A stretch of DNA of 42,928 nt from Basidiobolus meristosporus CBS 931.73 (Eukaryota; Fungi; Basidiobolomycota), in assembly GCA_002104905.1 (NCBI GenBank), contig MCFE01000710.1, positions 1-42,928 of the forward strand, given 5' to 3'. Numbering within the stretch: position 1 is the stretch's first letter; the number at the start of each line of letters is the position of its first letter. A program made the position numbers and the translations under genes. A model generated the notes under the pieces. It made no database searches. It was not told where the DNA came from and saw nothing but the letters and a program-made list of their open reading frames with translations. This document shows, piece after piece, positions 6,827 to 38,012 of this stretch.

Positions 6827-9358
6827 ATGACTTCCCAGTATAGCGCCTTGGCCCAAGACGAGCAAGAAAATCCAGACCCGGTCGTGGGCGACACGACATC
6901 TCGCCACCGGAACACGGAAAGAACCCCTTTATTACAAGGGGAGAGTGTGCGCGACCACTCGAACAGGGCCCAGAAAGTTGGTCCCGCCACCACCACCACA
7001 CAGGAGAACGTTTCTTCCGAATCGAATGTACATAGTTACCAAATTGCTTTTCACACACTCACCACTCGCTGGAAGGACCTGCAGCCTCAATACAGGTGGC
7101 TGATCATCGCTGGAATAATCCTCCTCTCCCAGGTCCTCCTGGGTCTTGTTGTAGTATACGGGGTGGTGCCTTGGGTGGCCCAGAGAGCCCTGAACCACTC
7201 GAAAATCGTCTTCCTCTCCACCAATATCACACAGCCCAAGCCGGATTCTTTCATGATGGAAGTGTCGGCTATACTGGAAAATGTTGGTCGGATACCTGCT
7301 ACCTCTCAGCCAACTAGCGTCGATATTTACTACAAAGAGCAGCACATTGGCAGGGCGGACATGCCCGGGATGCTGATTAGTTCTGACTCGGGGCCATTCG
7401 AAATCGCCACCAAGTTTGTGGCCCTTGATCGCACTGCATTGGGGGTTTTCGCCGCGGACATGGTCGCATTGCCAAAAATCACTTGGACAATGAAAGGCAA
7501 TGTGGATGTAGTGGCTAAAGGGCTTCATGTCCGGGGCCTAAAGCTCGATAAAGAGGTGACATTGGAAGGTTTGTTCAATCACATAGATATTCGTTGATGT
7601 GGACTTTGCTGACACGAATTTGTTGCCAGGGTTGAACGGGGCGAAAAACATCACTCTGAACTCCTTCGATCTACCTGGAAACGATCCGACTGGCGGAATC
7701 CATCTCGAAGCCTCTTCTACGCTGTTCAATCCGTCCAACATTTCCTTGGAAGTCGGGGTGATGAGGATGGGGATTTTTTACCAGGGCGTTAAAATGGCCA
7801 ACGTCACGGCGGAGGATGTCAGATTGTATCCTGGCGAAAACACACTGAATCTGAGCGGGAGCATGCTTCCATTAGACAAGAAGGCTTCAGCCGTAGCATC
7901 CAAGTTCTTTTCCCGGTATCTGTCCGGAGAGGAGTCGATCATCACCGTCGGTGGGCTCGAGAACTCTTCCCCTATTCCATGGCTTGATCGTGCCTTTCAA
8001 AGTCTCCGGGTGGATGTTCCGTTTCGAGCACCAGTGGCACCGGACCTGATTGAAGGGTTGGATGTGGGCCAGCTGGCCATCCATTTTACCAAATCCAATG
8101 CATATATGCCCTCGACCAATGGGAGTGTTGTGGCAGCAGTCAAAATGCCATTTGATTTCCCCATCGCAATCGAGTCGTTGGGACAAACGACACAACTATG
8201 CATGGCAACCTTTGGAGCGGATGATTGGTGTATACCCTTCGCAGAACTTCAAGTCCCCTTATTGCCAGTAACCACCACTACGGAGGCGGGGTTGATCTAC
8301 GTCAACAGCACCTTTGACAGCGTGCCACTCAAGGTTCTCGAATACCAAGAGGATATGTTCCGGTACTTCATCATGGCCACCTTCTTCAACCAAGAGAATA
8401 TTTTGGGGTTCACCGGGAATGTCGAGACCACGGCCAAGGCAGCAATCGGAGAGCTCGACCTTAAAGACATCAAGTTCACCAAGTATGTCAAGCTAAAAGG
8501 TATGTTTTCAAGCGGTCTAGCTTGACCACCGCCCAACTAATGCTCCATCTAGGTCTTGCCGGGTTCCACGACCCAGCCCCTGTGTTGACCGGTATGGAGA
8601 TATTGAAGGACATTGACAAGGTTACCTTTGCTGCGGACATCATCCTTTTCAACCCAACCAACTTCTCGGCAAAGATGGGGGACGTCTCGTTTGACCTGGA
8701 GTACAAGGACACGGTTATAGGCGAAGCATTCATCCCCAACTTCATGATCGTCCCTGGTAACAATTCGGTGAGTTGCAAGGGGAAGCTGCGGAAAGAAACG
8801 GATGATTACCTGCAGCAAAAGATCGAGGAGTTTTTGTCAAACTACGTGTCGGGCAGTGACAACGCACTAACTATCGTCGGGAACGACGCGTCCACGGACA
8901 TCGACTCCCTCAAGCCCATGCTGAAATCATTCCGGACCACCTTCAATGTGCCAGGGTCACACGACCAGCTGATGGACGAAGCGACTATGCATCTGCTCTC
9001 CAGAACGGCGGTCGTCAAGCTGTTCAACCCGCTAAAGTACACAGATATCAACATCAAATATCTCAATGCCACCTCCTTCTACGAAGGTTTGCCCGTGGGC
9101 CATGTGTTTGCCAACTTCACCGAGCCTCAATGGAATAATCAGTCCATTCTGATTCCCGCCGGAGGCGAGATCTATTCACCGAAATTACCGGTCTCTCTTG
9201 AATCCGGCGGGCTGAAATTGATCAAGAAGGCGTTGAGCAACGGGGGCCTCGCACTTGATATGGTTGCCAGATCTCTGGTAGAAATCAATGGAGTGGAGAT
9301 GTGGCTAACCTACGTCAACAGCAAAGTCCCCATTAAGGTGGTTGGGTGGTTCCTTTAA
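6827..9358 (+). CDS. DUF3712/Tag1-like single-pass membrane protein with tandem beta-sandwich repeats; 3 exons
   Basis: Three long ORFs are joined by GTTTGT..CCAG (~7569-7629) and GTATGT..CTAG (~8500-8552) introns. One N-terminal TM helix is followed by repeated motifs (LEGLNGAKNITLNSFDLPG, LFNPSNISLEVG, LFNPTNFSAKMGDVSF, KLFNPL). Confidence 0.75.
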
Positions 9359-11917: not shown

Positions 11918-14706
11918 ATGAGTATGGATAGCGATAGCGAAGACGCCTTTGAAGAAGCTCCTCTGCCAAGACCGCGAATACTTCGGCTCCCCAAACCTCG
12001 GCCACGCTCTTCAAAACACCAGGAAAAACGAGAGACGTCCCCCGCTCATGAGACTCACAACTTTCCCACCCAGAGCCAAGTCAAACCAGTCTTGTCCGAT
12101 CCCTCAATTAACCTTAATGAAAAACCAGAAAAGGTCAAAGTGAAGTCCACTCGTATGTTCGGAATCCAGCCCAAGAGGCCAAAAAGAAAGGAGGAACCCT
12201 TTACGGTAGCACCTGGGTCGGACAAAACACCCCCGAAGAGGAAGTTAGTGTTAGATTGTGTGGAGCTGGTAACGACCAGGAACCTCTCTCCGGAAACCCT
12301 CAACACCGAGAATCAACTCGACCCCGTGGAAAACGAGTCGAACTTTACTCTCCGGACGAAGCCAAGACAAGCGAGAACCTTTTTGGAGAGGGGTAACCGG
12401 GGCTTTGTTTGTTTAGGATTGGTCAGGTTTATTGACAGCGCGTTTTTTAGCTTCCCCGCCCCCTTGCATACAGCCAGAGGAGGGCTCGTTTTTGGTTGAC
12501 CCGGAGGGGGATGCTCAGAATATGTGTTTGGACAGACAGTCAGCTGCTTCCCCAAAACCACACCCAACTCAGAAAAGTGTAATCACTCTAGATTCGCAGG
12601 AGTCATCCACCGATCGCTCAGATTGTGAAGAGGAAGAAGAGAATCTGGGGTTCCTGAATGAGCTGATTGAACTTGAAGCGGTATGCTAGCCATCTACGTC
12701 CCCTTTTAACCCCAGATCCTCAAGTGGCCTTTCCTCAGGAACTGTTCCAAGCCGACACCTTTCAATGTTTCATGGAAAGAAAAAGTCATCTAGCGCGCAG
12801 TCAGAGGATATACGACTCCTCATCGACATGTAGGAAAGGTGGCACACTCGGGAAGATTCTTCACGAATACACATCCAAATCGCTGGAATCGATCTCTTAC
12901 TTCGAAGATCAGATCATACTTCTCCGAATGGACCTTGTCCAGAAGGTGAGGATCTTCGTCACGATCCTGTATCCCTTGCTAACTTATTTCCGTTCAGCTA
13001 AGGTCCCTTGCTCAAGAAAGAGCGCTTAAGCTCGAGCCTTTTGTATCATCGCTAACCCAAGAAAACCCCGTAAATGGACCCGAGCTCATCGATCCCTCCC
13101 GCACCCAACTCTCTTGCGAAGACCAGGAAGACGCCGATATGATACTCAGCGGTATTGGCGAAATCTCCGTGGTGCCAGCTCGAAACGCTGTGATTGATTT
13201 GGACGATCGCAAGGATAGAGATGGCTCAATCTCCCCATTTAACGAAGGAATAGCCAAGAGCCCCATTGATTCGAACCACAATAGCCCCCTTGCCGCGAGA
13301 TCGCCGCTACCAGCGGATCTGCCAGGGATCAGTGAAGATGAATTGGAAGCATTGACTCCACCACCGTTGCCCTTACTTCCAGAGATCGACTATGAGAGTA
13401 TGGTGGGATTGGAAACAGACGCTGGGGGATACGATTTGGACGATTTGAAAACACCACCACCATTACCTCCTCTGCGTGACGAACTCAACGACGAAGACTT
13501 GTACTCCTACGGAGGGCTATCTCCGTTGAATGACAGTGACGAAGACGACCTCATTTATCTGTGCGAGAAAGACGTGGATGATAGCGAGAAACACGAACCT
13601 CTGGAGTTTCGCCTGAGCGGGATGAGAATATCACAAGAGTTAGAGAGGGAAAGCTTCGAATACAGGTCTAGAAACACAGTGTCCCCTTGGCGAGATATCA
13701 CCCCTCGAGCCCGGCAGGCTGAATTGTACTCGACGCCTCACGACGAAACGGAAGCAGATATGCTGGAGTACAATCTGGTTGATGCTGAATCTCCAACCAC
13801 CCCGCACTATGCATCCTCGCCTCCCAAGCCTCGTGTAGACATCAAACAACGGGCTTGCGTCGATGAGCAACCCCAGTGGACGCGCTCTTTTCCTGCCAGT
13901 CAACCACCACCGCGTCAACCAAAAGCGGCCCATCCCGGAAGGGGCACAAACTCACAAGCCGCTGGGACCTCGATGCCTGATTATAAGAACATGTCGCTGG
14001 ATGTGTTGAAGGTAAGTGGGTAGGAAAAAGCCAGGATCCACGCCCGGCGAACTCAACGATTTCTATGTTAGGATCATGCCAAGGTATACGGGCTGCGAGT
14101 CAAATCACAAAGAATGCTGGTCTCGCAATTGGAGCACATCTGGCAAAACCTGTACGGCTCCCCTATTGTAGAAGAGCCATCCGGTTCCTTGACCCAACCT
14201 GCACCAACCTCCACTCGCCTGAAACCGCTATCCTCGACGCGGGCGAGCTCGAGTGCGTCCGAAATGGGGACCGACGAAGAGGGGGAAGAGAACGATCTGG
14301 ACGCATCCATATGGGACTTGACGGAGTCGGAGGTGGTTGAAGAAGTGGGCACCACCAGCGAGCCCAACCTAGAGGGGCATCTGCTCAAGTTCATCCAAAA
14401 CGACCCACAACTGTACAATTCTATTCTGTGTTATAAAGTAAGTTCGTTCAGCCGGGCAGTACAAAACCCCATGTCTTAACGCAACCTTAGCCTGTAGAGT
14501 TCGAGAAGCTTTACGAGACGGTCCTGCCTGTGATTCCATGCAAACGGCACGAATTAAGAGACTTTCTAGATAATCGGGTATGCATCCTGCCCAACCGTAC
14601 TTCCCTCCCACCCCCATCTCACTAAACGCTCGCCTCCGTCTAGGGAATCTTGGCGATCTTCTCGAAGGAGGGCTGGCGCGCACGCCGAGTCCGGACCCAG
14701 CACTGA
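11918..14706 (+). CDS. SLX4: Structure-specific endonuclease scaffold SLX4, multi-exon
   Basis: Long low-complexity N-terminus. The SAP-like motif MPDYKNMSLDVLK|DHAKVYGLRVKSQRMLVSQLEHIW and the C-terminal Slx1-binding domain FIQNDPQLYNSILCYK|PVEFEKL..LRDFLDNRGI are assembled across GT-AG introns. Stop TGA at 14704-14706. Confidence 0.8.
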
Positions 14707-18909: not shown

Positions 18910-21900
18910 ATGGAGAAAGACACAAACCCTATAGACAATCGTCACAGCGACGATAGCGAAGGCACCGCCACATCGGCCGCATTCGATACCTCCAAAGAAA
19001 AAACTGCCCATGCTCACTTCGAGCGCCCAACAAGTAACAACTGGGGCGAAGGTGAGCCCGACATTGATGTGCTTGGAGCCACCGGCGAATACGAAGATCT
19101 CAGACGCGAGCTTTCCCGGATCTCCACCATTCATCGTGTCACGACCGCCCACTCGTCGTCGGAGGCCACGCTTGAGGAAGGTCAAGGCGGCGACGACTTC
19201 GATCTAGATGACTTCCTCCGCTCAGTAGCACAAAAGAACGAGCAGGCCGACATCAAGCAGAAACGCATTGGCCTCACTTTCAAGAACCTCACTGTCGTTG
19301 GTGACAAGGTCGGCAAGATCTATGCTCCTGATTGTGGTACCCCATTCGTGGGTATTGCCAATCTTTTCAACCCATTCGCTTGGAAGAAGAAGGAGAAGCC
19401 TGCTGGTGATGACGAGGGCCGAGTCATCCTCCACGAGATCGATGGTTTCTGTAAAGATGGCGAAATGATCTTCGTACTTGGTAGACCCGGGGCCGGTTGT
19501 TCCACTCTTCTAAGAGTCCTGGCCAACGAGCGTAAGCAATACAAGAAGATCACAGGCGAGGTCTCGTACGGCGGCATCTCAGCTGAGGAGTTCAGCAAGA
19601 AATACGTCGGTGAAGTTGCCTACAACCCTGAGGATGATTTCCATTTCCCCACCTTGACCGTCAAGGAAACGATGGACTTTGCGCTCAAGTGTAAGACCCC
19701 TGGAAAGCGTCTTCCTGATGAAACCAAGAAATCCTTCGTACAAAATGTTCGTGACACCCTGCTTAAGATGTTCGGTCTGTCCCACACCTTGGACACCTTG
19801 GTTGGTAACGAGTACGTTCGTGGTGTATCAGGTGGTGAACGTAAGCGTTTATCCATTGCTGAGCAAATGGCTGCCCGTGCTGCTATCAATCTTTGGGACG
19901 GTAGTACGAAGGGTTTAGATGCCTCCTCCGCCTTGAGTTACGTGAAGTCTCTGCGCATCATGACCAATATCATGCACAAAGCCACCCTTGTGACTATCTA
20001 TCAGGCATCCGAGAATATCTACCAGGAATTCGACAAGGTCCTGCTGTTGGATCAAGGCCGCTGTGTGTACTTCGGTCCTGCTCAGGAGGCCCGTGAGTAC
20101 TTCAACAAACTCGGCTTCGAGAGCAACCCTCGCCAAACCACTTCGGATTTCCTGACTGCTGTCACCGATAAGCACGAACGCAGAATCATCCCTGGTATGG
20201 AGAAGGTTGTCCCACAAACCTCTGAGGAATTGGAGAAGGCTTACAAGAACTCCAGCATCTATCAGAGAATGCTTTTGGAGAGAGCCGAATACGAGAACTT
20301 CCTATCTAGCAATTCACCCGACAAGGAATTCAGACAGCACGTATCCGAATCCAAACAAAAGCATGTTCCAAACAAGTCTCCCTACACTACCTCCTACGCA
20401 CAACAAATCAAGGCCCTTACTCTTCGTCAATTCCAACTCACCTTTGGTGATCGCGCTGCTCTGATCTCTCGTTATGTCTCTATTGTGGTTAAATCGATTA
20501 TTGTTGGTTCTGTATTTTTACTACTCCCCACCGATACTGGCGGTGCCTTTACCCGTGGTGGTGTCCTTTTCTTCGCTCTTCTGTTTAACTCCCTCGTTGC
20601 CCAAGCTGAAATCCCAACTGCCATGAGCGGTCGCTCCATCCTCTACAAGCACAAGTCCTTTGCCTTCTACTACCCTAGTGCCTTCTACATTGCTCAAATG
20701 GTCGCCGATATTCCCTTCCTGATGGTTCAGATTCTCCTATTCTCGTCGGTACTATACTGGATGGCCGGTCTTCAAGCAGATGCCGGGAAGTTCTTCATGT
20801 TCATGTTTATCTTGTTGGTATCCAGCTTCAGTTTGACCGCCTACTTCCGTATGTTTGCCGCATTCTCCAAGGACTTCGACACTGCGTCCCGGTACTCTGG
20901 CTTGGTTCTTATGGCCTACCTATTGTATACTGGTTATTTGATTCCCAAGACTCAAATGCATCCTTGGTTCGTCTGGATCTTTTGGATTAATCCGCTGGCG
21001 TATGGTTTCAAGGCGCTGATGTCGAATGAGTTCAAGGGATTGAAATTCACCTGCAATGCTGGAGCTTTGATTCCCAACGGACCTGGTTACAACGATATCA
21101 ACCATCAAGCCTGTACTTTGGCCGGTAGTCGTCCTGGTGAAAGCTTTGTCGATGGTGCTGCGTACATGGACAAGGCCCTCGGATACGATGCTGACCAGAT
21201 GTGGGTCGACTTTGTCGCCGTTGTTTGCTTCTGGATATTGTTCTCTCTTCTTGCCATGTTCGCCATGGAATTCAAGACATTCGGAAAGGGCGGCTTCACC
21301 TTGAGCATGTTCAAGCGCACCAAGGAGTCGGAAGTCAGTGGAAACTCCACTCCTGAAAACCATGTTCAAGTCGACGCCAAGATCGAGGACATCGCCCTCG
21401 AAGGCACTGACTTCACCTGGCACAACATTGATTACGTTGTTCCTGCCAAGGGCTTCCCTGATGGTAAACAACTGCTTCACAAGATCGACGGATGGGTTAA
21501 GCCTGGACAACTTACTGCTTTGATGGGTTCCTCTGGAGCTGGTAAGACCACTTTATTGGACGTGTTGGCGCAACGCAAATCTATCGGCAAGGTCACTGGT
21601 GATATCTTTGTGGACAGCCGTCCTCTTGGTGCTGACTTCCAACGTACCACTGGCTACTGTGAACAGATGGATGTTCACAACCCAGCTGTTACTGTCCGCG
21701 AGGCTCTGCAATTCTCTGCTACCCTGCGCCAACCTCCCGAGGTACCCCAATCTGAGAAGTACGCTTACGTCGAGGAAATTATTCATCTTTTGGAGATGGG
21801 CCCCATTGCTGATGCTCTTATTGGTGATGTCGAAAGTGGTGTTGGTATCTCTGTCGAACAGCGCAAGCTCCTGACCATTGGTGTCGAACTTGTCGCCAAG

Positions 21901-23289
21901 CCCAAGCTTCTTTTCCTCGATGAGCCTACCTCCGGTCTCGATGCTCAAGCTGCCTTCAACATCATCCGATTCATGCGCAAATTGGCCAACCAAGGACAAG
22001 CCGTCCTTTGTACCATCCATCAACCCAGTGCTGTTCTCTTTGACTTCTTCGACCACCTTTTGTTGCTCGCCCGTGGCGGTAGAACCGTGTATTTCGGCGA
22101 ATTGGGGCCTGACTCGAAGACCTTGTTGGATTTCTTTGAGCAAAATGGCGGACCCAAGTGCTCCTCGAGCGCCAACCCTGCCGAATATATTTTGGACGTT
22201 GTCAATGATAAGAAGCGTGGTATCGACTGGCCCACTGTCTGGGACAACTCGCAAGAAAAGGTTGCCGTCCAGCAAACCTTGAGCAACATCAAGCCTCTTG
22301 AACTCTCCTCCCAAGAGAAGCATGATCAACATGAATACGCTACCACATTCGGTACTCAATTGCGTGTTGTAGGCCGCAGAATGTTCACCTCCTGGTGGCG
22401 TAACATCACCTATAACTTCGGTCGTCTTATGTTCTGTCTCATCTTCTCCCTCCTCCTTGGCTTCTCCTTCTGGCAGCTTGGTAACACTCAAATGGATCTT
22501 CAGCTTCGTAACTTCGCCATCTTCCAGTCTCTTGTTATGGGAGTTATCTTCATGAACTTGGCCCAGCCCAGATACATTGATGAGCGTAATGTGTACAACC
22601 GTGAGAATTCAAGCAAGATGTATGGCTGGAAACCCTTCTGGATTTCCATCATGACTGCCGAGCTACCTTTCCTCGCAGTAACTGTCACTGTGTTCTGGCT
22701 TGTCTTCTACTGGGTTAGTGGATTCAGTGGTGATTCAGGACGTGCTTTCTACGCCTGGATCATGTATATCATCTTTGGCTTCTTCTGTGTGTCCTTGGGA
22801 CAAATGATCTCTGCCTTCTCCACATCCAAGCAAATGGCCGCTCTCCTCAATCCTTTCTTCTTCTCCATGTTGAATCTTTTCTGTGGTGTTGTTGTTCCAT
22901 ACAATGCTCTACCAGGCTTCTGGAAAGCTTGGATGTACTGGATTGATCCATTCCATTACTGGGTTGAAGGATTGGTCGTCAACGAGCTTCACGGACTTCC
23001 AGTTCGCTGTGCCAGCAACGAGTTTGTAACATTCAACCCACCCACTGGCCAGTCCTGTGTCCAATACGCCGGAAACTTCTTGGATCGCTCCCCAGGATAC
23101 CTCAATAACCCCAACGATACCATGAACTGCCAGTACTGCTCGTACTCCCTTGGTGACACTTTCTACGAACCACTCAAGTGGAGCTTCGACCACCGCTGGC
23201 GCAACTTTGGAATCATGGTTGGCTTCTGGGTCTTCAACCTTCTCTTCACTGGCTTTGTTATTTCCAGATTCCGTAGCAACCGTCGCTAA
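18910..23289 (+). CDS. Full-size pleiotropic drug resistance (PDR/ABCG) ABC transporter, intronless, 1459 aa
   Basis: NBD-TMD-NBD-TMD order. NBD1 has the degenerate Walker A GRPGAGCST and signature VSGGERKR; NBD2 has GSSGAGKT and the degenerate signature ISVEQRK. PDR_CDR-type extracellular Cys loops are present. Confidence 0.96.
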   Translation: MEKDTNPIDNRHSDDSEGTATSAAFDTSKEKTAHAHFERPTSNNWGEGEPDIDVLGATGEYEDLRRELSRISTIHRVTTAHSSSEATLEEGQGGDDFDLDDFLRSVAQKNEQADIKQKRIGLTFKNLTVVGDKVGKIYAPDCGTPFVGIANLFNPFAWKKKEKPAGDDEGRVILHEIDGFCKDGEMIFVLGRPGAGCSTLLRVLANERKQYKKITGEVSYGGISAEEFSKKYVGEVAYNPEDDFHFPTLTVKETMDFALKCKTPGKRLPDETKKSFVQNVRDTLLKMFGLSHTLDTLVGNEYVRGVSGGERKRLSIAEQMAARAAINLWDGSTKGLDASSALSYVKSLRIMTNIMHKATLVTIYQASENIYQEFDKVLLLDQGRCVYFGPAQEAREYFNKLGFESNPRQTTSDFLTAVTDKHERRIIPGMEKVVPQTSEELEKAYKNSSIYQRMLLERAEYENFLSSNSPDKEFRQHVSESKQKHVPNKSPYTTSYAQQIKALTLRQFQLTFGDRAALISRYVSIVVKSIIVGSVFLLLPTDTGGAFTRGGVLFFALLFNSLVAQAEIPTAMSGRSILYKHKSFAFYYPSAFYIAQMVADIPFLMVQILLFSSVLYWMAGLQADAGKFFMFMFILLVSSFSLTAYFRMFAAFSKDFDTASRYSGLVLMAYLLYTGYLIPKTQMHPWFVWIFWINPLAYGFKALMSNEFKGLKFTCNAGALIPNGPGYNDINHQACTLAGSRPGESFVDGAAYMDKALGYDADQMWVDFVAVVCFWILFSLLAMFAMEFKTFGKGGFTLSMFKRTKESEVSGNSTPENHVQVDAKIEDIALEGTDFTWHNIDYVVPAKGFPDGKQLLHKIDGWVKPGQLTALMGSSGAGKTTLLDVLAQRKSIGKVTGDIFVDSRPLGADFQRTTGYCEQMDVHNPAVTVREALQFSATLRQPPEVPQSEKYAYVEEIIHLLEMGPIADALIGDVESGVGISVEQRKLLTIGVELVAKPKLLFLDEPTSGLDAQAAFNIIRFMRKLANQGQAVLCTIHQPSAVLFDFFDHLLLLARGGRTVYFGELGPDSKTLLDFFEQNGGPKCSSSANPAEYILDVVNDKKRGIDWPTVWDNSQEKVAVQQTLSNIKPLELSSQEKHDQHEYATTFGTQLRVVGRRMFTSWWRNITYNFGRLMFCLIFSLLLGFSFWQLGNTQMDLQLRNFAIFQSLVMGVIFMNLAQPRYIDERNVYNRENSSKMYGWKPFWISIMTAELPFLAVTVTVFWLVFYWVSGFSGDSGRAFYAWIMYIIFGFFCVSLGQMISAFSTSKQMAALLNPFFFSMLNLFCGVVVPYNALPGFWKAWMYWIDPFHYWVEGLVVNELHGLPVRCASNEFVTFNPPTGQSCVQYAGNFLDRSPGYLNNPNDTMNCQYCSYSLGDTFYEPLKWSFDHRWRNFGIMVGFWVFNLLFTGFVISRFRSNRR

Positions 23290-25909: not shown

Positions 25910-27484
25910 TTAGGCAGAGGCGGAGGCGGCCTTGGGTTGAGTTTCGACATCAAAGAGAGCCTTGATGTTCTCAGTGCTCAAGGACTTAGGGCGCTCAATG
26001 GGCATACCCAAAGCACGATCCCAAATAAGCTGAGAGAGAACGCCTAGACCACGGGAAACACCGAAGAGGACGGTGTAGAAGTCTTGCTCAACCAAACCGT
26101 AGTGTTGAAGGAGAACACCGGAGTGAGCATCAACGTTGGGCCAGGGGTTCTTGGTCTTGCCGTGCTCAGTGAGGACGCCAGGAACAATCTTGTACAATTG
26201 GCTAACCAACTTGAAGGTAGGGTCATTGGGCAAGTGCTTCAAGGCGAATTCACGTTGGCATGCGTAACGAGGATCGGTCTTACGAAGAACGGCGTGACCA
26301 TATCCGGGAACAACACGTCCAGACTTGAGGGTCTTCCAGACATACTCCTTGATGGTTTCATCAGAGTGGTCGCCAGCGCCAAGCTCCTTGCGCATCTCCA
26401 AAATCCAGCGCAAGACTTCTTGGTTAGCAAGGCCGTGAAGAGGACCAGCCAATCCATTAAGGCCAGAGGCAAAGGAAAGGTAGGGGTCGGAAAGGGCGGA
26501 TCCAACCAAATGGGTAGTGTGTGCACTGACATTACCACCTTCGTGGTCAGTGTGAATGGTAAGATACAAACGCATCAATTCGACGAATTCCTTGTTGTCA
26601 CCCAATCCCAAAACAGTAGCCATGTTGTGGCCATAATCGGCGTTGGGGTTAAGGGCAGGGAGCTTGCCATCCTTGAAGACATTCTGGTAAATACGACCAG
26701 CAATGTTGGGAAGCTTGGCAATCAAGTTCATGGAATCTTCATAGGTGTATTCCCAGTACTTGGACTTGTGGATACCTTGATGGTAGGCCTTGGCGAAGGT
26801 AGATTCGCTTTGGAGGGCGGTAACGGCAAGGGAGAACTGGGTCATAGGATGGACGGTCTTGGGGCAACGGTCCAAAAGGTCCTCGACAAATTCGGGGATT
26901 TGAGCGCGAGAAGCCCACTCAGCAGAGAGCTGGTTGACTTGATCTTGGGTGGGGATCTCACCGGTAACCAAAAGCCAGAAAAGAGCTTCGGGGAGAGGCT
27001 CTTCACCGCCAGGGGCGGCTGGGAGCTTTTGTTGGCATTCAGGAATGGTCATGCCACGGAAACGGATACCCTCCTCGGGATCCAAAACGGAACCCTCCCA
27101 AATAAGGCCCTTGATACCTCTCATACCACCGTAGACCATATCAACGGTAACATTGCCCAAAACCTTGGATCCATGCTCCTTCTTGATTCTTTTGACCTCT
27201 TCCTGTTTCTCGGGGATAAGTTCACTAAGACGATCTCTCAAACCCTATTGTTGTGTTGAAAAAGGTCAATCAATGTAACATGCCAAATTCAGATTAATGA
27301 AATCAATGCTTACAGAGTTGGCGGGAGTCGAGTAAGCACGAACAGCAGTAGCAGCGAACTGGCGGCGAGCAGTAAGCTAGTAGAGATCAAAAGAGAGTCA
27401 GCAATGTTATGCAAAAGCATGTGTACTGGAAAGCGTGGCAACCTTAAGGAAAGATGTGGAAGCAGAAGAGCGGAGGAAAGACAT
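25910..27484 (-). CDS. CIT1: Mitochondrial citrate synthase; short presequence exons plus one long exon
   Basis: [62 protein letters not shown]. The presequence [14 protein letters not shown]|[17 protein letters not shown] is assembled across two introns (first donor choice inferred). TATAAATA at about 27560-27553. Confidence 0.96.
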
Positions 27485-34495: not shown

Positions 34496-34672
34496 ATGGC
34501 CCTTACCTGTACCGACATCTTCAAATTCTTCTTTGCCGTGGTTTTCCCGCCTCTTGGTGTACTACTTGAACGTGGCCCATGCCATTGTGACCTACTGATC
34601 AATATAGCTTTAACACTCCTGGGCTATATTCCCGGAATCATCCATGCTTTCTATATTATATTGAAATATTAG
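34496..34672 (+). CDS. PMP3: Plasma membrane proteolipid 3 (PMP3/UPF0057), 58 aa, not in the ORF track
   Basis: Manual translation MALTCTDIFKFFFAVVFPPLGVLLERGPCHCDLLINIALTLLGYIPGIIHAFYIILKY* shows the family motifs FPPLGV and LTLLGYIPGIIHA. Confidence 0.93.
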   Translation: MALTCTDIFKFFFAVVFPPLGVLLERGPCHCDLLINIALTLLGYIPGIIHAFYIILKY

Positions 34673-34865
34673 CTCCGGCCGCATCATTCTGTTCATAAAG
34701 TGTACGATTACTCTACTAATCCGATAACCCCGTATCTAAAAGCGGGAAAATAAACTTCTTCGTAACCAATTTGAGTAAGGAAATAGCAGTTGGTTTTATT
34801 AAAGGTTTCCGAGTTAATGTGTGTATATAGGTAGTGATATATTGTGAATTTTACATGGCAAACAA

Positions 34866-37800
34866 TTAACGACCGAAGAATCTCTTGTAGAGAGCAGCAA
34901 CTCCACCATCGCCACTATGGTCTGAGGTGTCGTATGCACCAGCTCCTCCGTTGCCGCCATTATCTCCACCGTTGCCTCCTCCATTACCGCCGTAGCCGCC
35001 ATTACCTCCATTGCCGCCACCGTTACCGCCAGCACCGTTTCCAGTATCATAGGCACCGGCTCCTCCGTTACCACCACCATTGCCACCATTGCCTCCACCG
35101 TTGCCACCTCCGTTACCTCCATAGCCACCATTGCCACCACCATTGCCGCCATTTCCTTCACCGTTGCCACCACCGTTGCCGCCATAGCCACCATTGTCTC
35201 CACCGTTGCCACCAGCACCGTTTCCAGTATCGTAGGCACCAGCTCCACCGTTGCCACCTCCGTTGCCGCCATTGTCTGAACCATTTCCTCCACCGTTACC
35301 TCCATAGCCACCGTTCCCACCACCATTGCCGCCATTTCCTCCACCGTTGCCACCGGCACCGTTTCCAGTATCATAGGCACCAGCTCCTCCATTGCCACCA
35401 CCATTACCACCATTGTCGCCACCATTACCTCCATAGCCGCCGTTGCCACCACCGTTGCCGCCATTGTCTCCACCATTTCCTCCACCGTTACCTCCGTAGC
35501 CACCACCATTGCCGCCATTTCCACCACCGTTGCCACCAGCACCGTTTCCGGTATCATAGGCACCAGCTCCTCCGTTGCCACCATTGTCGCCACCATTTCC
35601 ACCACCGTTACCTCCATAGCCGCCGTTGCCACCACCATTACCGCCATTGTCTCCACCGTTGCCTCCACCGTTGCCACCAGCACCGTTTCCAGTATCGTAG
35701 GCACCAGCTCCTCCGTTGCCACCACCATTACCACCATTGTCGCCACCGTTACCTCCGTAGCCACCACCATTGCCCCCATTTCCACCACCGTTGCCACCAG
35801 CACCGTTTCCAGTATCGTAGGCGCCAGCTCCTCCGTTACCGCCTCCGTTACCGCCATTGTCTCCACCGTTGCCTCCACCGTTACCTCCGTAGCCACCATT
35901 GCCACCACCATTACCGCCACTTCCTCCACCGTTGCCACCAGAACCGTTTCCAGTATCGTAACCACCAGCTCCTCCGTTGCCACCACCGTTGCCGCCATTG
36001 CCACCATTGTCGCCACCATTTCCTCCACCGTTACCTCCGTAGCCGCCGTTGCCACCACCATTACCGCCATTTCCACCAGCACCGTTTCCAGTATCGTAGG
36101 CACCAGCTCCTCCGCTACCGCCTCCGTTACCGCCATTGTCGCCACCATTTCCTCCACCGTTACCTCCATAGCCGCCGTTGCCACCACCATTATCGCCATT
36201 GCCACCACCGTTGCCACCAGCACCGTTTCCAGTATCGTAGGCACCAGCTCCTCCGCTACCGCCTCCGTTACCGCCATTGTCGCCACCGTTGCCACCACCG
36301 TTACCTCCGTAGCCACCGTTGCCGCCGCCATTGCCACCACCGTTGCCACCAGCACCGTTTCCAGTATCGTAGGCACCAGCTCCTCCGCTACCGCCTCCGT
36401 TACCGCCATTGTCGCCACCATTTCCTCCACCGTTACCTCCGTAGCCACCGTTGCCGCCGCCATTGCCACCACCGTTGCCACCAGCACCGTTTCCAGTATC
36501 GTAGGCACCAGCTCCTCCGCTACCGCCTCCGTTACCGCCATTGTCGCCACCGTTGCCACCACCGTTACCGCCATTGCCACCACCGTTACCTCCGTAGCCA
36601 CCGTTGCCACCACCATTACCGCCACTTCCTCCACCGTTACCACCAGAACCGTTTCCAGTATCGTAACCACCAGCTCCTCCGTTGCCGCCACCGTTGCCGC
36701 CATTGCCACCACCGTTACCTCCGTAGCCACCATTGCCACCACCATTACCGCCACTTCCTCCACCGTTACCACCAGAACCGTTTCCAGTATCGTAACCACC
36801 AGCTCCTCCGTTGCCGCCACCGTTGCCGCCATTTCCACCACCGTTACCTCCGTAGCCACCATTGCCACCACCATTACCGCCATTTCCACCACCGTTGCCA
36901 CCAGCACCGTTTCCAGTATCGTAAGCACCAGCTCCTCCGTTACCGCCATTGTCGCCACCATTTCCTCCACCGTTACCTCCATAGCCGCCGTTGCCACCAC
37001 CATTATCGCCATTGCCACCACCGTTGCCACCAGCACCGTTTCCAGTATCGTAGGCACCAGCTCCTCCGTTACCGCCATTGTCTCCACCGTTGCCACCACC
37101 GTTACCTCCATAGCCACCATTGCCACCACCATTACCGCCACTTCCTCCACCGTTGCCACCAGAACCGTTTCCAGTATCGTAGGCGCCAGCTCCTCCGTTG
37201 CCACCACCGTTGCCGCCACCATTTCCTCCACCGTTACCTCCATAGCCGCCGTTGCCACCACCATTACCGCCATTGCCACCACCGTTGCCACCAGCACCGT
37301 TTCCAGTATTGTAGCCACCGGCTCCTCCGTTACCACCACCGTTACCGCCATTACCACCACCGTTACCACCATTGCCGCTGTGATCTGAGACATCATACGC
37401 ACCTGCACCTCCATTTCCACCACCGTTTCCTCCACCATTACCGCCACTTCCTCCGCCGTTTCCGCCAGCACCGTTTCCAGAATTGTAGGCACCAGATCCA
37501 CCGTTGCCGCCACCGTTACCGCCATTGTCGCCACCATTTCCTCCTCCGTTACCTCCATAGCCGCCGTTACCAGCACCATTGCCGCCAGCACCATTTCCAG
37601 TATCGTAGGCACCAGCTCCTCCGTTACCACCACCGTTACCACCATTGTCTCCACCGTTTCCTCCTCCGTTACCGCCATAGCCGCCATTACCTCCATTTCC
37701 TCCACCGTTACCGTTTCCTCCACCATTGCCACCGTAGCCGCCGTTTCCTCCATTGCCACCGCCATTACCACCTAATCCTCCAGAGAGGTCGCTAGTGTCA

Positions 37801-37919
37801 TAAGAGCCAACACCCCCAGCACCAGCACCAGCACCAGCATGACCAGAGCCTGAGCTTCCGGCGCCAACCGAGCAGGCAGCAGAGAGGACGAAGAGAAGGG
37901 CAGGAGCAGAGAATTTCAT
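34866..37919 (-). CDS. Secreted Gly/Asn-rich repetitive protein, 1017 aa, about 22 repeat units
   Basis: Signal peptide MKFSAPALLFVLSAACSVG, then units of (NGG/NGGG)n-YGG-(NGG)n-AGAYDTGNGAGG, ending LYKRFFGR. TATATAAG is 86 nt upstream. Confidence 0.85.
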   Translation of the reverse strand: MKFSAPALLFVLSAACSVGAGSSGSGHAGAGAGAGGVGSYDTSDLSGGLGGNGGGNGGNGGYGGNGGGNGNGGGNGGNGGYGGNGGGNGGDNGGNGGGNGGAGAYDTGNGAGGNGAGNGGYGGNGGGNGGDNGGNGGGNGGSGAYNSGNGAGGNGGGSGGNGGGNGGGNGGAGAYDVSDHSGNGGNGGGNGGNGGGNGGAGGYNTGNGAGGNGGGNGGNGGGNGGYGGNGGGNGGGNGGGNGGAGAYDTGNGSGGNGGGSGGNGGGNGGYGGNGGGNGGDNGGNGGAGAYDTGNGAGGNGGGNGDNGGGNGGYGGNGGGNGGDNGGNGGAGAYDTGNGAGGNGGGNGGNGGGNGGYGGNGGGNGGNGGGNGGAGGYDTGNGSGGNGGGSGGNGGGNGGYGGNGGGNGGNGGGNGGAGGYDTGNGSGGNGGGSGGNGGGNGGYGGNGGGNGGNGGGNGGDNGGNGGGSGGAGAYDTGNGAGGNGGGNGGGNGGYGGNGGGNGGDNGGNGGGSGGAGAYDTGNGAGGNGGGNGGGNGGYGGNGGGNGGDNGGNGGGSGGAGAYDTGNGAGGNGGGNGDNGGGNGGYGGNGGGNGGDNGGNGGGSGGAGAYDTGNGAGGNGGNGGGNGGYGGNGGGNGGDNGGNGGNGGGNGGAGGYDTGNGSGGNGGGSGGNGGGNGGYGGNGGGNGGDNGGNGGGNGGAGAYDTGNGAGGNGGGNGGNGGGYGGNGGDNGGNGGGNGGAGAYDTGNGAGGNGGGNGGDNGGNGGGNGGYGGNGGGNGGDNGGNGGAGAYDTGNGAGGNGGGNGGNGGGYGGNGGGNGGDNGGNGGGNGGYGGNGGDNGGNGGGNGGAGAYDTGNGAGGNGGGNGGNGGGNGGYGGNGGGNGSDNGGNGGGNGGAGAYDTGNGAGGNGGDNGGYGGNGGGNGEGNGGNGGGNGGYGGNGGGNGGGNGGNGGGNGGAGAYDTGNGAGGNGGGNGGNGGYGGNGGGNGGDNGGNGGAGAYDTSDHSGDGGVAALYKRFFGR
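34930..37770. repeat. Coding minisatellite of the Gly-rich gene (units about 90-180 bp; 132-bp period in the centre)
   Basis: An identical 70-nt block occurs at 36077, 36218, 36350 and 36482. Confidence 0.9.
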
Positions 37920-38004: not shown

Positions 38005-38012
38005 CTTATATA
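38005..38012 (-). promoter_or_regulatory. TATA box of the Gly-rich protein gene
   Basis: TATATAAG, followed about 30 nt downstream by an initiator-like TCATCAGT. Confidence 0.55.

Follow-up and report, generated by a model that had tools for sequence, protein, structure and literature searches.

The complete 42,928-nucleotide (nt) scaffold MCFE01000710.1 of the frog-gut fungus Basidiobolus meristosporus CBS 931.73, to which we refer as the window, contains on its reverse strand an uninterrupted open reading frame (ORF) of 1017 codons at 34866..37919 (-), a single exon, whose translation is dominated by glycine and asparagine. Its sequence indicates that this ORF is genuinely protein-coding in the Gly/Asn frame and has been shaped by selection. 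On a balance that tips slightly in favour of this reading, we consider it a single-exon gene for a secreted, disordered and turn-rich extracellular matrix polymer that could be crosslinked through its tyrosines and would be elastic or adhesive. Secreted Gly/Tyr structural polymers are known in animals and plants, among them silks, resilin, eggshell and shell-matrix proteins and the plant glycine-rich proteins (GRPs). They are hardly known in fungi, where extracellular materials are usually seen as polysaccharide together with small proteins such as hydrophobins. What is new here is a predicted secreted, low-complexity Gly/Tyr polymer from a fungus that is based on Asn instead of Pro and is without a public gene model, and the gene shows that annotation pipelines hide genes of this class.

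Because the repeat that makes up most of the gene leaves three frames open across its length, the reading frame had to be tested. Comparison of the last 20 codons of 16 modules showed that differences between modules fall at codon positions 1, 2 and 3 of the Gly/Asn frame 126, 126 and 553 times, respectively, corresponding to 482 synonymous and 213 non-synonymous codon differences. The synonymous share of the differing codons in this frame is 69%, compared to 26.5% expected from random point changes in the repeat sequence. Furthermore, the Nei-Gojobori method, applied without gaps to paralogous modules within this one gene and pooled over equal-length module pairs, gave proportions of synonymous (pS) and non-synonymous (pN) differences of 0.35 and 0.09 and a pN/pS of 0.26. 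The two other frames that are open over the repeat each encode about 984 amino acids, one rich in Val, Ala, Met, Thr and Glu (34814-37771, -) and the other rich in His, Arg and Cys (34844-37795, +). Both were rejected as genes, with synonymous to non-synonymous differences of 90:570 and 30:665, respectively; as the differences between modules are mostly non-synonymous in these frames, the two ORFs are by-products of the repeat, although they could mislead gene callers. The antisense Pro frame, the one further frame in which many differences are synonymous, is interrupted by a stop opposite each Tyr codon. Codon usage in the Gly/Asn frame resembles that of the neighbouring housekeeping genes, with GGT preferred over GGC and GGC over GGA, and with GGG nearly absent.

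The ORF is framed by the elements expected of a gene, with the ATG and signal peptide lying exactly at the 5' edge of the repeat and the stop codon 13 codons beyond its 3' edge. A TATA-like box (TATATA within ctatataagg, 38007..38012, -) is found 93 nt 5' of the ATG, which is preceded by an in-frame stop 39 nt upstream and has an A at position -3. At the other end, an AATAAA polyadenylation-type signal (34795..34800, -) follows 65 nt past the stop. The N-terminus of the protein, MKFSAPALLFVLSAACSVGA followed by G, has the appearance of a classical, eukaryotic Sec-type signal peptide, a prediction made by eye from the sequence. The putative signal peptide (residues 1-20; 37860..37919, -) consists of MK, the hydrophobic stretch FSAPALLFVLSAAC and SVGA, and thus combines a short charged start with a 14-residue hydrophobic core (residues 3-16, mean Kyte-Doolittle hydropathy 1.98) and a small-residue pair at -3/-1, by which rule cleavage is predicted after Ala20. 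It is followed by an N-terminal cap (residues 21-52; 37764..37859, -) made up of GSSGSGH(AG)4G and the first, variant anchor GSYDTSDLSG, then by the repeat array with 21 modules of NGG and NGGG units (residues 53-1004; 34908..37763, -) and finally by a unique 13-residue tail, GGVAALYKRFFGR, which together with the stop codon occupies 34866..34907 (-). The C-terminus (...GDGGVAALYKRFFGR) carries no hydrophobic end of the type required for a glycosylphosphatidylinositol (GPI) anchor, the highest 10-residue Kyte-Doolittle mean within the last 30 residues being 0.71. The protein ends in VAALYKRFFGR, and the KR in this tail (34869-34907, -) is its sole dibasic site (Kex2-type), four residues from the C-terminus, where cleavage between VAALYKR and FFGR would remove a tetrapeptide. 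A Kex2-processed precursor of the repellent type was rejected on the grounds that there is this single KR, positioned four residues from the end.

The composition of the 1017-residue protein is extreme, with 58.7% Gly, 18.9% Asn, 6.3% Ala, 4.4% Tyr and 4.3% Asp. Its repeat (about 950 residues) is devoid of Cys, Pro, Lys and Arg; the only Cys and the only Pro of the protein belong to the signal peptide, while its Lys (two) and Arg (two) are all confined to the last 13 residues. We counted 22 modules, of which 21 are marked by an anchor matching G[AS]G[AG]Y[DN] and the first by the variant GVGSYDTSDLSGG. The anchors are of the type (N/S)GGAGAYDTGNG(A/S)GG and follow one another at distances of 28-61 residues, most often 43-47. 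They alternate with central GGYGG motifs (n = 22), such that each half-module of about 22 residues contains one Tyr. In the first, fourth and last anchors TGNG is replaced by SD[LH]SG. DNGG usually occurs once per module, and five NGS sequons are present. The 44 evenly spaced Tyr are set apart by Gly/Asn spacers, with gaps of 22.2 +/- 3.2 residues and a coefficient of variation of 0.14, compared to about 1 for random placement. This regularity of modules and Tyr is far beyond chance. All but two of the 192 Asn are followed by Gly, and the protein carries a net charge of about -41, to which about 45 evenly spread acidic residues (about 44 of them Asp) contribute. On the DNA level, Tandem Repeats Finder resolves the array into 21-nt sub-units and modules of 129-132 nt, with scores of up to 1300. 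A preliminary description of this ORF, made by reading the sequence without database searches, had listed a signal peptide, about 22 modules with a central GGYGG in most of them, a repeat free of Cys, Pro, Lys and Arg, the exchange of TGNG for SD[LH]SG in three modules, regularly spaced Tyr and the lack of a GPI-like tail, and our counts and hydropathy values agree with it in all of these respects.

The same description had called the protein undescribed, and our searches bear this out. A Pfam scan returned no family at E<=1, a word search with the whole protein returned none of 8000 candidates at E<=1e-3, and a word search with the N-terminal residues 1-60 gave no match at E<=10. The exact sequence is missing from a collection of 15 billion proteins in which the citrate synthase encoded on the same scaffold is present. 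An exhaustive phmmer (HMMER) search against 1.84 billion representative sequences produced 0 matches at E<=1e-3, a sequence search of the PDB gave no match at E<=10, and the ESM Atlas yielded no usable match. Metagenome scans for GAYDTGNGAGG, carried out both with the protein sequence and with a degenerate DNA pattern, were also without a match, and in the literature on glycine-rich, secretome or adhesive proteins of Basidiobolus we found no description of such a protein. As we suspected that a composition filter might have removed true matches, phmmer controls were run locally at the same database size. The protein itself was recovered at 1211 bits and a copy with 50% composition-biased substitution at E 5e-78; copies mutated by 10-50%, a module-permuted copy, a six-module fragment and a copy with scrambled spacers and intact anchors were all recovered at E<=1e-55, whereas shuffled copies and generic NGG/Tyr copolymers were not. 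The blank phmmer result, combined with these controls, therefore indicates that no annotated protein in the library carries this module, although Gly/Asn proteins of looser similarity, and genes that lack annotation, would go unnoticed in it. Within the reach of these searches, the predicted protein belongs to no known family.

In order to rationalise what such a protein might do, we considered its repeat grammar together with structure predictions. Asn-Gly is a strong former of type I' beta-turns, and a chain of about 1000 residues with Gly/Asn spacers is expected to be flexible. Evenly spaced Tyr in a flexible chain constitute the grammar of resilin, of the GGYGG proteins of plants and eggshells, and of phase-separating domains of the sticker-and-spacer type. 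The turn-prone Asn-Gly spacers and the evenly spaced Tyr and Asp are therefore read as features of a putative building block for a hydrated extracellular gel or coacervate. AlphaFold2 gave no secondary-structure element worth naming, neither for the full-length protein from the single sequence (mean predicted local distance difference test, pLDDT, 24.4) nor for three modules supplied with 3 rows of aligned module blocks (mean pLDDT 34.6), and such low values are compatible with disorder. In the mechanism that we propose, the protein would enter the secretory pathway and end up outside the cell, either free or retained non-covalently; it has no GPI signal. Once mature, the chain of about 1000 residues would be an acidic low-complexity polymer without a fixed fold, a string of turns and disordered Gly/Asn spacers in which the Tyr act as stickers. 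Chains would associate into a hydrated gel or coacervate, the material could then be set by oxidative Tyr-Tyr crosslinking, and the evenly spaced Asp might help the chain to retain water and make it sensitive to pH or Ca2+, through which the material could be modulated. This would yield an extracellular material that is elastic or adhesive. That the chain is disordered, associates with itself and is crosslinked, and where it acts, is inferred.

The biology of the genus offers candidate sites for such a material, namely the adhesive of the capilliconidium beak, the elastically loaded wall of the conidiophore, or a spore or hyphal coat. Basidiobolaceae form capilliconidia with a beak that is coated with adhesive material (PMC13370150), and PMC5126542 cites an ultrastructural study of 1994 that deals with the adhesive droplet. 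Furthermore, the conidia of Basidiobolus are discharged as the pressurised wall of the conidiophore contracts (PMC4959704). The gene provides a concrete candidate for the proteins of the spore glue or of the discharge apparatus, and its Pro-free Asn-Gly repeat grammar would be of interest for biomaterials. A bolder possibility, which we think unlikely though worth stating, is that Basidiobolus possesses a hidden, unannotated family of secreted polymers to which this gene belongs, in which Asn-Gly turns replace Pro-Gly and which forms the elastic wall for conidium discharge or the capilliconidium glue; if true, no protein elastomer or adhesive of its type would have been known from a fungus before. 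Asn-Gly is also the dipeptide that deamidates fastest, and the approximately 190 such sites might act as a built-in clock by which the material changes in charge and swelling as it ages. No bearing of the gene on pathogenicity is evident.

Other explanations for the ORF and its product were weighed against the polymer reading. A non-functional expanded minisatellite, unexpressed and open in several frames by chance, would account for the three open frames and would fit with the lack of a model in public protein sets, of relatives and of expression data, but third-position variation is concentrated solely in the Gly/Asn frame (pN/pS 0.26), an ATG with a signal peptide and a stop codon sit at or just past the edges of the repeat, TATA-like and AATAAA signals flank it, and missing annotation would be expected if low-complexity DNA was masked; we regard such an origin as highly improbable. 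If the gene is real, its product could instead be an ordered glycine fibre, in which NGG/NGGG runs form polyglycine-II helices or another solenoid and the turns are made by the YDTGNG anchors. The result would be a stiff fibre in the wall or a flat face that binds ice or mineral. The Gly content of 59%, the many XGG triplets and the very regular modules with cap-like variants at both ends are in line with this proposal. Snow-flea-type polyglycine-II antifreeze proteins have an uninterrupted Gly-X-X tripeptide periodicity. Here, by contrast, an extra Gly breaks the triplet register every 1-3 triplets: we found 39 runs of one XGG triplet, 56 of two, 20 of three and 3 of four, such that runs of at least three triplets cover 216 of the 1017 residues (21%) and runs of at least four cover 3.5%, and consecutive Asn are spaced by 4 residues in 86 cases and by 3 in 38. 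As the strict Gly-X-X periodicity is absent, the polyglycine-II proposal is unsupported. AlphaFold2 moreover predicts nothing of the kind (pLDDT 24 with the whole protein, 35 with three modules), although predictions made without a deep alignment argue neither for nor against a compact bundle of such helices, and no solved structure matches by sequence. We consider an ordered fibre quite unlikely. The preliminary description had drawn this analogy among others, naming mycobacterial PE_PGRS proteins and the snow-flea antifreeze protein, and had proposed a structural or adhesive biomaterial; an extracellular structural or adhesive role remains the most reasonable reading, whereas its ordered polyglycine-II form is not supported. 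PE_PGRS and snow-flea proteins do resemble the predicted protein in their very high Gly content and in that most of the remaining residues are Asn or Ala, but the latter differs in its broken triplet register, in its eukaryotic Sec-type signal peptide and in the lack of any polyglycine-II element in the AlphaFold2 models; no PE domain (PF00934) was detected by Pfam at E<=1 and no sequence relation to PE_PGRS by phmmer among the 1.84 billion representatives.

A different role is suggested by the acidic character of the chain. To our knowledge, no biomineral occurs in Basidiobolus, which counts against an acidic Ca2+-binding or mineral-associated matrix protein. The flexible chain of such a protein, rich in Asp and Asn, would capture and buffer divalent cations or direct the growth of crystals, much as might the NG-repeat (Gly-X-Asn) domains of the mollusc proteins nacrein, N66 and pearlin. 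The roughly 45 evenly spread acidic residues, the Asn-Gly repeats and 18 GGxGxD matches, about one per module of about 45 residues and each followed by NGG, fit such a function, and NG-repeat domains are known from shell matrix proteins (PMC6599672, PMC7677314). The likeness consists in an acidic repeat rich in Asn, Gly and Asp within a secreted matrix protein (PMC6599672, PMC7677314), but in the three mollusc proteins it amounts to a short insert in or beside a carbonic anhydrase domain, whereas the Basidiobolus protein is all repeat and has regular Tyr. Neither the carbonic anhydrase domain of nacrein and N66 nor any other partner domain was found in it by Pfam, and GGxGxD occurs once per module instead of in tandem nonapeptides with a hydrophobic position, with no HemolysinCabind match; a Ca2+- or mineral-related role thus appears very improbable. 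The protein might also be a protective or lubricating coat of the spore or hypha, resistant to trypsin and without a special mechanical role, that serves during passage through the amphibian or reptile gut. The lack of Lys and Arg in about 950 repeat residues would suit a gut passage, as would the fact that Basidiobolus meristosporus inhabits the gut (PMC4959704; 10.1101/2025.03.31.646025). However, the 44 Tyr are sites for chymotrypsin and pepsin, the small residues are sites for elastase, and nothing in the sequence specifically favours a gut coat, which we judge to be improbable.

The polymer reading itself has points that weigh against it. Concerted evolution and the ungapped alignment of low-complexity modules blur the pN/pS estimate of 0.26. 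The pLDDT values of 24.4 and 34.6 are no proof of disorder because no real alignment exists for this protein, and ordered or amyloid-like assemblies are just as conceivable for chains of poly-Gly/Asn. Lastly, the proposed link to a glue, an elastic wall or a coat rests solely on the biology of the genus.

Among known systems, the predicted protein probably works most like resilin, the elastic silks and the Gly/Tyr wall proteins, while being a member of none of them. With resilin and elastic silks (flagelliform-type GPGGX) it shares a secreted, Gly-rich, low-complexity chain with regular Tyr and tandem turn-forming dipeptides, and resilin uses its Tyr for dityrosine crosslinks. The trait that is found here, Tyr at regular intervals (22.2 +/- 3.2 residues) in a Gly-rich chain without a confident fold, denotes a functional resemblance to resilin and not membership. 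In contrast to resilin and elastic silk, with their Pro-containing repeats (YGAP, GPGGX), the only Pro among the 1017 residues of the protein falls within the signal peptide, and Asn-Gly is used in place of Pro-Gly; Pfam detected no chitin-binding or silk terminal domain and phmmer no sequence relation. Any likeness to resilin and elastic silks is convergent. Silk fibroin, by contrast, was rejected as a model, as Ala accounts for 6.3% of residues and long poly(Gly-Ala) blocks are missing: Gly-Ala stretches amount to HAGAGAGAGG close to the N-terminus and one AGAY in each module. The fibroin-like GAGAGY analogy drawn in the preliminary description is accordingly not sustained. The class I/II GRPs of plants and the Gly-Tyr eggshell proteins of insects and schistosomes also start with a signal peptide and contain (GGX)n-type repeats as well as GGYGG motifs, which are oxidatively crosslinked in the plant GRP and eggshell systems. 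The Basidiobolus protein differs from them in its 19% Asn, in its much longer hierarchical module with a YDTGNG anchor, in its fungal origin and in the lack of detectable homology. An RTX beta-roll was rejected too, as there are no tandem GGxGxDxUx nonapeptides and no HemolysinCabind match.

Within the fungi, SsGsr1 of Sclerotinia sclerotiorum is the one characterised glycine-rich wall protein that we found, a GPI-anchored Gly/Ser-rich protein that has been shown to be in the cell wall (PMC10269696). It resembles the predicted protein in its fungal origin, its signal peptide and its tandem glycine-rich repeat. SsGsr1 is, however, small (omega site S231), with 13.8% Gly overall, 11-residue repeats and a GPI signal (PMC10269696), and the predicted protein has neither the small size, nor the 11-residue repeats, nor the GPI signal, and no sequence relation to it; SsGsr1 is not comparable. 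A fungal GPI wall protein was rejected for want of a C-terminal GPI attachment signal. The possibility raised in the preliminary description that the ORF might encode a plain member of a characterised family of fungal glycine-rich wall proteins finds no support in the comparison with SsGsr1.

The Gly/Asn gene has ordinary chromosomal neighbours in the window, including a Sec24-like gene, Tmemb_185A, a PDR-type ABC transporter, a permease and two DUF3712 ORFs. Adjacent to it is an ORF of 58 amino acids for a Pmp3/UPF0057 plasma-membrane proteolipid (34496-34672, +; Pfam PF01679, E 3.5e-22), which is convergent with the Gly/Asn gene, 194 nt separating the two stop codons. The gene order at the locus is Sec24 - Pmp3 - Gly/Asn gene - Tmemb_185A. 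Farther away, two adjacent ORFs at 7599-9358 (+) match DUF3712 (E 2e-14 and 6e-4) and could represent either exons of a single gene or two genes in tandem. An ATG-started ORF of 294 amino acids at 13139-14023 (+) matches no Pfam family at E<=1e-3. The PDR/CDR-type ABC transporter is encoded by an uninterrupted ORF of 1459 amino acids at 18910-23289 (+), in which ABC2_membrane, ABC_tran and PDR_CDR domains are recognised. At 25910..27241 (-) lies a citrate synthase ORF whose translation is 100% identical to an NCBI protein of Basidiobolus meristosporus CBS 931.73. A second B. meristosporus copy shows 82% identity to it and two copies of B. ranarum show 93% and 91%, and these multiple citrate synthase copies point to duplicated genomes in Basidiobolus.

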